From sequence record OQ411014.1: a stretch of 64,000 nt of DNA; one strand, written 5' to 3'. The notes below the pieces were generated by a model that was not told the DNA's origin, did no database searches, and was given only the letters and a program-made list of their open reading frames with translations. Shown one piece after another: positions 28,667-58,448 of this stretch. Numbering within the stretch: position 1 is the first letter of the stretch; each line of letters starts with the position of its first letter. The position numbers and the translations under genes are program-made.

Positions 28667-28671
28667 TATTT

Positions 28672-28701
28672 TTGAGATGAATGAAAATTTTGTGATATAA
28701 T
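28672..28701 (+). promoter_or_regulatory. Early promoter (TTGAGA-N18-TATAAT) upstream of the non-coding region
   Basis: TTGAGA...TGTGATATAAT. Confidence 0.72.
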
Positions 28702-28707
28702 GTATAG

Positions 28708-29210
28708 TACGGATAACACCTATGTTGAATGTCTTTGATAAACAGAACCTGATCCACTCGAAAATGTAGAGGGCAGATGAGTAGAACATTCACTACGAAG
28801 TGCAAATGAAACCCGTCAGTAATAAAGCGTAAGTGCGGTCATACAAACGAGACGTAAGACACACGCGACACGGCAAAGCGGCACTATAAAAGCGATAAGA
28901 AAACATATTCGCTCTTGATAGACTTATGAGGCATACTCACCCAGTTGAAAGGGAGTCTCTTTACGGAGAGACAGCAGTATTTGTTGCTGAATTAGCAAGT
29001 ACTGTAAGCGTGTGAGGAACACGACCGTTGTATGCAGACTGTAGTAGCTGGAAACAGGACAACCCGCCAGCGTTGCTACTTTTATTTGTACGGGAAAGAT
29101 CCGTCCAAAAAGTAGTGAATCTACAAATTCAGATTGGTAAGACTACCAGCGTCAGGATATTCCTGATTTTTTTTCGGCCCTCCCTTGTGGGGGGATGGAA
29201 TTGGATCAAC
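28708..29210 (+). ncRNA. Candidate large structured non-coding RNA (about 500 nt), family unassigned
   Basis: ORF-free and GC-richer; own promoter; more than 10 hairpins including a UACG tetraloop and a possible GAAA tetraloop; G-U pairs favour the + strand; long-range TGATCCA/TGGATCA pairing. Confidence 0.6.
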
Positions 29211-29237
29211 AAACCTCGTCAAGTATAATATGAATAG

Positions 29238-29332
29238 TATTAGTACTTAATAATTCAAATGAATTGAGAGATATGAGATGAGCGATAGCGAAATCGAATA
29301 TGTCTCAATTCTTGGCTTACGCAGTAAGCCAA
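29238..29332. repeat. Cluster of short palindromes/hairpins
   Basis: GAATTGAGA.ATAT/ATAT.TCTCAATTC enclosing GAGCGATAGCGA; TTGGCTTAC-GCA-GTAAGCCAA. Confidence 0.6.
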
Positions 29333-29354
29333 CGAAACATTACAGGAGCTTATC

Positions 29355-35233: not shown

Positions 35234-35254
35234 CGTCACAAAATGTGATATAAT
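35225..35254 (+). promoter_or_regulatory. Early promoter (GTGAGA-N18-TATAAT)
   Basis: TGTGATATAAT extended -10. Confidence 0.65.
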
Positions 35255-35282
35255 GGAATAACACACTAAAGAAGGAAACTAT

Positions 35283-35426
35283 ATGAAACTACTCCGTAAT
35301 AGCTTATTTGCGTTTTACATGGATTATCAAATCTCGCTAAAACTAAATCCAGTACTGACAGTACTAGGAACAGCCACTGTTGCAGCTTTCACTGCATGGT
35401 TAGTTACACTGTTTTGTGCTCTATAA
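35283..35426 (+). CDS. 47-aa membrane peptide
   Basis: Below the ORF-track cutoff; SD AAGGA; MKLLRNSLFAFYMDYQISLKLNPVLTVLGTATVAAFTAWLVTLFCAL. Confidence 0.55.
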   Translation: MKLLRNSLFAFYMDYQISLKLNPVLTVLGTATVAAFTAWLVTLFCAL

Positions 35427-35441
35427 TCTTAGGATAACAAA

Positions 35442-58130: not shown

Positions 58131-58406
58131 CAAACCAATAAAGTGTGATATAATAGTTTTACAGTTTACAAGGCACTCTGATTTAAAATAAAATAAAATC
58201 AAAAGTGCCTTCTCTTTTGCCAAAATTTATGATACACTATAAATTCTGACAAAAGCATCTCACTAAAACGAGATGAGTTAAAAAAAGATTTAAAAAAGTG
58301 GTTGACAAGGCATTAAGAAGTACGTATAATTAATCACATCAAGACGAGAACGTGATTGAACAAATGAGAAAAAGGACTTGACTCTACCAACGGATTTTGG
58401 TAAACT
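58125..58406 (+). promoter_or_regulatory. Cluster of 3-4 tandem sigma70 promoters with A-tracts
   Basis: TGTGATATAAT (-10 at 58149); TGATACACT (58230-38); TTGACA-N17-TATAAT (58302-30); TTGACT-N17-TAAACT (58378-406). Confidence 0.75.
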
Positions 58407-58448
58407 AAACAAACTTTACTTATCATCAATAAATGAGGAATCAATACT

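Follow-up and report, generated by a model that had tools for sequence, protein, structure and literature searches.

What is encoded in the 688-nt unannotated gap (28667-29354; deposited annotation) between EJP02_162 and EJP02_163 of Escherichia phage EJP2? The gap lies within a 64-kb stretch, hereafter the window, of the 349-kb genome of this Asteriusvirus (OQ411014.1; record position minus 62000 gives window position). The initial annotation had proposed a + strand, ornate structured RNA of about 500 nt, possibly of a new family, in what it took to be the longest non-coding gap of the window. The gap is indeed among the longest, but not uniquely so once mechanically predicted ORFs are counted. 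We show, from comparison of homologous sequences, that the region carries, on its + strand, the gene for a ~470-520-nt non-coding RNA whose multi-domain, pseudoknotted fold is shared by a whole family; the transcript itself is inferred, as there are no expression data.

Promoter and coding capacity of the gap

The TTGAGA-N18-TGTGATATAAT promoter proposed ahead of the RNA was recovered as described by a consensus scan (Table 1), and the predicted transcription start falls at ~28707-28709. An identical extended -10 is found upstream of each of the four EJP2 copies and, with few exceptions, of the homologues, those in prophages included.

A 66-aa ORF with a TTG start (29028-29228) and several minus-strand ORFs overlap the gap. 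No in-frame ORF is conserved across 55 homologues, among which such ORFs, including those on the minus strand of the core, occupy three different frames and end at varying positions. The description of the locus as ORF-free thus stands in the sense that it has no conserved ORF.

Further exact copies of TGTGATATAAT occur in the window at 35244, 58144 and 61316. The second of these (58144-58154) opens an ORF-free region (58131-58448; folding z-score -3.4) that holds a second promoter, TTGACA-17-TATAAT, and a strong hairpin with a U-rich run after it; a terminator/promoter cluster is the probable reading, and a short RNA may be part of it. The promoter at 35244 is followed by a gap of ~200 nt (35244-35441; folding z-score -0.9) that opens with a ribosome-binding site and an ATG, and is likely to be an unannotated small protein gene rather than an RNA.

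Covariation and architecture of the RNA

In the comparison with dinucleotide-shuffled controls suggested at the outset, the folding energy of the region was about 3 standard deviations better than that of the controls on both strands (z = -3.2 and -3.1, respectively, for the + and - strands). Such near-equal scores cannot tell the strands apart. From 22 copies, RNAalifold predicted 67 pairs, of which 38 have compensatory double changes. Stack search and pair counts on an alignment made with MAFFT from 55 non-identical copies (A4) support ~15 helices and three long-range loop-to-strand pairings. For the 79 pairs proposed from this alignment, 96.7% of cells were canonical, vs. 36-43% with the partners slid, 76% in column shuffles and 37% in random pair sets. 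Compensatory double changes were seen at 59 of the 79 pairs, amounting to 834 double-change cells, compared to 70-112, 215 +/- 16 and 105 +/- 22, respectively, in the same three controls. A covariance model of the 3' core (R1) found 95 copies, 81 of them distinct. In the alignment of these 81, 97.9% of cells were paired and 27 of 30 pairs had double changes; none of 500 shuffles reached any of these measures, and slid partners gave 35-50%. Although the R1 alignment was built by fitting to the model, the MAFFT alignment, which is independent of it, leads to the same result. Covariation among homologues, on which the structural claim had been made to depend, is therefore present, and the fold is supported across 81 distinct homologues. 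At the paired sites of the 79 pairs in A4, G-U outnumbered A-C by 322 to 29, which fixes the + strand; the bias in G-U wobbles first noticed in the EJP2 copy is thus borne out family-wide. Every family helix is canonical in the window copy. The RNA meets the criteria of the descriptive class 'large ornate structured ncRNA': more than 400 nt, covarying helices and pseudoknots, no conserved ORF and conserved unpaired segments.

The features of the window copy are collected in Table 1. The first long-range pairing (PK1; columns 7-14 with 96-103 of A4) joins the leader to the loop of hairpin H2. The second (PK2) is formed between the apical loop of the long hairpin and a strand that lies ~130 nt further 3', while the third (PK3) has the family consensus GUUGY, in invariant CGACCGUUG, paired with RCAAC in the apical loop AAACAGGGCAACCCGC. 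In the 81 distinct sequences, 98-100% of PK2 and PK3 cells are canonical. Helices X and Y enclose a variable insert (28817-28869) that gives way to a UUCG tetraloop in short variants; inserts vary as they do in other structured RNAs, the replacement of one domain by this tetraloop being an example.

Most of the stems originally read from the EJP2 sequence have the support of family covariation: TGAATGT/ACATTCA (PK1), TGAG/CTCA, GTCTCTT-TACG-GAGAGAC (28955-72), which sits at a variable insert site, CAGTAT..TTGCT/AGCAA..GTACTG (the long hairpin, 28974-29005), CGTG/CACG and GCTGG/CCAGC. The C-run/G-run hairpin at 29178-29194 also has family support, but its changes are restricted to G-C/G-U. We found no support for TGGTA/TACCA or CTG-GAAA-CAG as family features, nor for AGTAGC/GCTACT, in place of which the family pairs 29040-44 with 29121-25 (the distal helix W). 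The 7-bp closure between the 5' and 3' regions, TGATCCA (28750-56) with TGGATCA (29202-08), is present in the window copy and in a few lineages, but is not a property of the family (mean best helix 3.9 bp vs. 3.8 bp shuffled). A different closing helix predicted by RNAalifold, GAUGA/UCGUC, remains unproven: its strands are nearly invariant, it competes with H1 and H2, and one of its pairs is broken in ~23% of weighted sequences.

Table 1. Positions of the promoter, the RNA and its parts in the window, and of the other EJP2 copies
Feature	Position	Strand	Basis or remark
Sigma-70-type promoter	28672..28701	+	11/12 consensus matches plus TG (consensus scan)
-35 element TTGAGA	28672-28677	+	18-nt spacer to -10
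TG-extended TATAAT, TGTGATATAAT	28691-28701	+	
RNA body	28708..29230	+	nhmmer and covariance-model matches; alignments A2, A4, A6
PK1, leader TGAATGT with ACATTCA in H2 loop	28726-28732 with 28786-28792	+	8 pairs, 4 covarying
Hairpin H1	28755-59 with 28769-72	+	covaries; conserved loop GAAAATGTA
Hairpin H2	28781-83 with 28794-96	+	covaries
Helix X	28799-803 with 28881-85	+	pair counts
Helix Y	28813-16 with 28870-73	+	pair counts
Hairpin Z	28891-95 with 28909-13	+	6/6 pairs covarying in A4
Invariant GATAG	28917-21	+	
Hairpin TGAG/CTCA	28927-30 with 28936-39	+	
CC/GG	28940-41 with 28951-52	+	
Invariant AAGGGAG	28949-55	+	
Insert-site hairpin GTCTCTT-TACG-GAGAGAC	28955-72	+	
Long 12-bp hairpin	28974-29005	+	11-12 pairs covarying
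PK2, apical loop CTGAATT with AATTCAG	28987-28993 with 29126-29132	+	7/7 pairs covarying
Hairpin	29009-12 with 29020-23	+	3' core
PK3, GTTGT in invariant CGACCGTTG with ACAAC	29027-31 with 29059-63	+	2/5 pairs covarying
Helix W	29040-44 with 29121-25	+	
Helix V	29047-51 with 29067-71	+	apical loop AAACAGGACAACCCGC holds PK3 strand
Helix U	29074-76 with 29115-17	+	carries insert
Recurring module GTACGGGAAAGATCCGTC	29088-29105	+	in helix U insert
First CGTCA motif	29150-54	+	overlaps terminator-like hairpin
Terminator-like hairpin GTCAGGA-TAT-TCCTGAT	29151-67	+	T run to 29175 (consensus scan)
Conserved 3' tail, ATGGAATTGGATCAACAAACC	29178..29230	+	
Hairpin CCCTCCC-TTGT-GGGGGG	29178-94	+	in conserved 3' tail, 29178..29230
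Second CGTCA motif	29217-21	+	within conserved 3' tail
Other EJP2 paralogue	L002:36737-37476		record about 36.7 kb
Other EJP2 paralogue	L003:44486-45205		record about 170.5 kb
Other EJP2 paralogue	L005:24340-24930		record about 250.3 kb

Two different sites of the RNA have optional inserts in which a module with the consensus GTACAATATAGATCCGTC recurs, and some copies contain it twice (L043, L036, L006 and others; A4 columns ~360-390 and ~535-555). It behaves like a portable unit of structure or binding.

The length of about 500 nt stands, but the conserved element extends further than had been supposed. Within the family, conservation extends from the 5' leader as far as the second CGTCA (29217-29221), ~50 nt beyond the T8 'terminator', and thus reaches about 29221-29230. 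The TCAGGA/TCCTGA stem is a covarying, terminator-like hairpin with a U run in 25 of 55 copies and is absent from the others. Where present, this internal hairpin lies ~85 nt before the conserved 3' end, and only 5 of the 55 copies have a terminator within 350 nt downstream. For these two reasons, the position of the true 3' end is left undetermined: the RNA may exist in both short and read-through forms, or the internal hairpin may be structural. A search for a pairing partner of the 3' tail yielded only 4-bp candidates.

The two CGTCA motifs, separated by ~65-90 nt, vary together: in a Serratia sp. 2723 prophage copy (L042:5397-5910) each is CGACA, and in RaK2 (L074:1260-1729) each is CTTCA. 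The base that follows them (A or G) also tends to agree between the two. No pairing partner was found that accounts for these changes, which could be a sign that a protein, or the DNA itself, is involved in recognition, as opposed to a decoy mechanism. CGTCA with an AT-rich stretch was also considered as a phage promoter motif and rejected, as it is not enriched in the window.

Relatives of the RNA and comparison with known families

We searched IMG/VR, metagenomes and bacterial genomes with exact-pattern scans for the invariant core, followed by nhmmer. Together with the GenBank phages, this defines a family of 81 distinct copies. The window copy belongs to it by profile (nhmmer E = 2.5e-85), by the R1 covariance model (100.9 bits, E about 1e-20), by the invariant CGACCGTTG ... 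GAAACAGNNCAACCCGC core, and by PK2 and PK3. Among GenBank phages, the BLAST comparison with related jumbo phages that had been proposed as a check revealed that the 3' 370 nt are kept at 69-90% identity at a syntenic locus of 26 records, from jumbo phages of Salmonella, Klebsiella, Erwinia, Serratia, Yersinia, Cronobacter, Pectobacterium and Xanthomonas. RaK2-like jumbo phages carry 3-5 copies per genome (~70 records, with parts of the element matched). IMG/VR matches were all on contigs of about 350-380 kb or their fragments, and 64 of 71 metagenome matches were true.

In the 276 kb of the EJP2 record that were searched, there are four diverged paralogues, all on the + strand and each in an unannotated gap behind an extended -10 promoter. 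They lie at about 37, 91 (the window copy), 171 and 251 kb of the genome, spaced by ~54, 80 and 80 kb, and similar positions are occupied in other genera. Each paralogue clade spans several phage genera, implying that the copies are old and have been retained. In phage RaK2 itself, a divergent copy directly follows a sigma-factor gene, beneath the 'hypothetical protein' ORF245 (L074:1533-1739).

An unexpected result was that bacterial genomes also carry the RNA. Some enterobacterial prophages have a single copy, located between an integrase gene and a convergent gene for an S24/CI-type repressor, after which comes a cro-like gene. The integrase is of the serine type in some of these temperate phages and of the tyrosine type in others, with the RNA-cI arrangement unchanged. 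In the bacterial-genome copies and on many metagenome contigs, which share this arrangement, the RNA keeps its own extended -10 promoter. Just 2 of 5426 complete E. coli genomes carry the RNA, unannotated and in a 10.8-kb island beside ffs; a plasmid collection gave zero family matches. No protein gene was consistently linked to the RNA across jumbo-phage and prophage copies.

Some individual members deserve comment. In E. coli LR-29-1 (NZ_AP027515.1; L073:15791-26685), the 10.8-kb island lies between ffs and ybaA and contains an IS3-disrupted tyrosine integrase gene, several genes for proteins without a family match, and a DUF4326/DUF488/dual-OB trio that resembles a candidate defence cassette. 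The RNA on a 2.8-kb contig assigned to a 'Clostridium sp.' MAG (L045, DPOH01000171.1) hardly differs from the prophage copies of Buttiauxella and Enterobacter, and the contig is probably a mis-binned fragment of an enterobacterial prophage. Five metagenome members (L102, L126, L109, L095 and L130) align with the profile in the 3' core alone (its positions ~221-503), and some members of this kind adjoin T4-like portal and baseplate genes; either they lack the 5' domain or it has diverged beyond recognition.

Does the family belong to a known RNA class? No Rfam 15 covariance model matched anywhere in the window at gathering thresholds (cmscan), and between 28500 and 29450 a relaxed threshold (E<=10) gave only chance-level matches to snR69, the S15 leader and whalefall-1. 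ARAGORN detected no tRNA or tmRNA gene in the window. It follows from these Rfam 15 and ARAGORN results that the RNA is not ROOL, GOLLD, a group I or group II intron, RNase P RNA, tmRNA or 6S RNA. In the case of ROOL (RF03087), there was no covariance-model match even at E<=10. GOLLD (RF01998) likewise gave no covariance-model match, and the window contains no tRNA. Neither ARAGORN (0 genes) nor Rfam gave any support for tmRNA, RNase P RNA, 6S RNA or SRP RNA. Nor is the RNA described in the EJP2, CBB, fEgEco12 and PA5oct genome papers or in what our literature searches returned; we found no description in a catalogue of phage structured RNAs either, though its motif lists were left unchecked. 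The suggestion that the family may be new therefore stands, and we rate it as new: it lies outside Rfam 15 and resembles ROOL and GOLLD in kind while being a member of neither.

The resemblance consists in a length of several hundred nt, many covarying helices, long-range pairings between loops and strands, a lack of coding capacity, a presence in both phages and prophages, and a function that is unknown. Unlike ROOL and GOLLD, however, the family here has 3-5 diverged paralogues per genome in jumbo phages and a fixed site beside cI in temperate phages. The hosts also differ, being Enterobacterales here, with the addition of Xanthomonas jumbo phages, whereas those of ROOL and GOLLD are Firmicutes and rumen or marine lineages. 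GOLLD is often found beside or around phage tRNA genes; the tRNA genes of EJP2, by contrast, lie at 256-269 kb, the nearest being ~6 kb from copy D.

A precedent for abundant long non-coding RNAs comes from the Pseudomonas jumbo phage PA5oct, related to the RaK2 group, which makes four ORF-free + strand transcripts of 236-619 nt (ncRNA001-004), two of them accounting for 2-5% of phage reads throughout infection (PMC7318152). No structure or family has been described for these RNAs. ncRNA001 and ncRNA002, the only two that we compared, show no detectable relation to the present family by nhmmer or by covariance model with filters off.

Possible roles of the RNA

The reading that we favor, without rating it quite at an even chance, is of a stable RNA, transcribed by the host polymerase, that acts in trans as a decoy or scaffold by binding a conserved component of the host, possibly as a homo-oligomer; no expression data are available for it and no partner has been identified. 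Host RNA polymerase would transcribe the RNA from its sigma-70, extended -10 promoter, presumably early in lytic infection and possibly also in lysogens. The RNA would then accumulate as a stable and abundant molecule, its ends, abundance and stability all being inferences, and would probably owe its action to its tertiary structure and to the single-stranded segments that are invariant (GAAAAUGUA, GAUAG, AAGGGAG, CGACCGUUG, AAACAGGGCAACCCGC and the repeated CGUCA). The likeliest action would be to bind, and then sequester or redirect, a component conserved across enterobacterial hosts, in the service of host takeover or counter-defence. The sole ground for placing the target in the host is the lack of a linked protein gene. 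The prophage copies sit at the accessory end of temperate phages.

By analogy, the active form could be a homo-oligomer in which PK2 joins separate molecules, because comparable pairings in ROOL and GOLLD, detected by covariation and termed 'tertiary', proved to be intermolecular bridges in RNA-only cages. Taken further, the family may represent an unrecognized class of large phage RNA that forms RNA-only homo-oligomers through PK2, or possibly mixed oligomers of the 3-5 paralogues, to serve as a scaffold, cage or multivalent decoy while enterobacterial hosts are being taken over; we consider this unlikely, but worth keeping in mind.

Might the RNA instead act in cis? A structured leader that forms on the nascent transcript of a strong early promoter and modifies RNA polymerase or masks terminators, carrying transcription into the genes beyond by processive antitermination of the put/EAR type, would account for the position of every copy directly behind a promoter and for the few terminators within 350 nt downstream, while the internal hairpins of 25 of the 55 copies would need to be read through for the tail to be made. 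As in HK022 put and EAR, the structured RNA begins immediately 3' of the promoter and terminator-like hairpins lie downstream of the fold; EJP2 copies A, B and D, moreover, precede co-directional gene arrays. Copy C, however, is followed by convergent, minus-strand genes, with an annotated terminator downstream of this copy in phage UE-S1, and the prophage copies run head-on into cI, from which we infer that the RNA is not simply a leader. Neither copy C nor the prophage copies have a co-directional operon after them, and the downstream genes of different copies are unrelated. HK022 put is only ~70 nt; the family RNA is ~5-7 times larger than put/EAR, and 500 nt with three pseudoknots far exceed what known antiterminator RNAs require. 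A cis-acting leader thus seems to us quite improbable. The chances appear poorer for a replication origin transcript, the persistent downstream RNA-DNA hybrid of which would prime leading-strand synthesis, the four copies then being four origins. ColE1 RNA II and the T4 oriF and oriG transcripts are also promoter-driven, non-coding, a few hundred nt long and without a terminator of their own, and T4 has several dispersed origins. In EJP2, the four copies of ~500 nt are likewise dispersed, recur at similar positions in other genera and lack a dedicated terminator. The C-run/G-run element near the 3' end is followed by AT-rich DNA, and the phage has T4-like replication and recombination genes that include RNase H. 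Yet these known origin RNAs work as RNA-DNA hybrids and have no conserved pseudoknotted core, and R-loop priming would leave the invariant loops and the three covarying pseudoknots unexplained. GC skew is flat at all four copies, with no inflection (weak evidence, as skew follows transcription), no promoter for an antisense regulator was noted, and lambdoid origins lie elsewhere than at the int/cI boundary, where the prophage copies are found.

The long invariant unpaired stretches held in place by pseudoknots bring to mind a ribozyme, whose catalytic core would process the RNA's own ends or act on a cellular RNA, and conservation of this kind, from jumbo-phage paralogues to prophage copies, is typical of catalytic or ligand-binding cores. 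Against this, no Rfam 15 ribozyme matched. Group I introns have a P3-P7 pseudoknot and group II introns a domain V, and both insert in genes with continuity of the exons. We take the helix order and loop-based pseudoknots of the present RNA to differ from the group I core, and its topology to be unlike those of group II and RNase P. The RNA also has its own promoter, lies between complete ORFs and shows no flanking exon continuity, and both intron classes can be set aside. We see only a slim prospect for catalysis. That the region is not an RNA gene at all, but a DNA element (repeats bound by a protein, or a site for recombination or packaging) or a protein gene that has decayed or escaped annotation, is scarcely credible. 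The parallel changes of two CGTCA-containing direct repeats in two lineages are of a type that protein-binding sites can show, and short hypothetical proteins have been annotated there in GenBank. The compensatory changes at 59 of the 79 pairs and the excess of G-U over A-C, on the other hand, point to selection for a folded + strand transcript; the frame and extent of the ORFs differ between copies, and CGTCA has no enrichment in the window. Covariation has already largely refuted this explanation.

Large ornate RNAs of bacteria and phages, such as GOLLD, ROOL, OLE and raiA, are some of the plainest unsolved cases in RNA biology, and most live in organisms that are hard to manipulate. The family described here, the covariation support for which equals that of the known large ornate RNAs, provides an example of ornate phage RNAs that is tractable in E. 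coli, some jumbo phages having been reported on K-12 hosts. Its presence in phages and prophages of E. coli and relatives makes deletion, complementation, pull-downs and structural work routine, and natural variants are available from the prophage copies and from the four diverged paralogues that each genome carries. Should the oligomer reading be true, the family would supply the first 'ornate' RNA of this sort from phages of E. coli, K-12 strains included. Jumbo phages under development for therapy carry four of these RNAs, whose abundance is inferred and whose effect on the host is unknown.

Rfam gains a candidate family, and many GenBank records need correction. In several, the RNA gene is overlaid with short 'hypothetical proteins', one to four in number (PQ464590, PP191103, MK773491 and others), CDS calls that are probably artefacts. 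In phage UE-S1, part of the RNA gene is marked as a repeat_region (L075:1465-1622).
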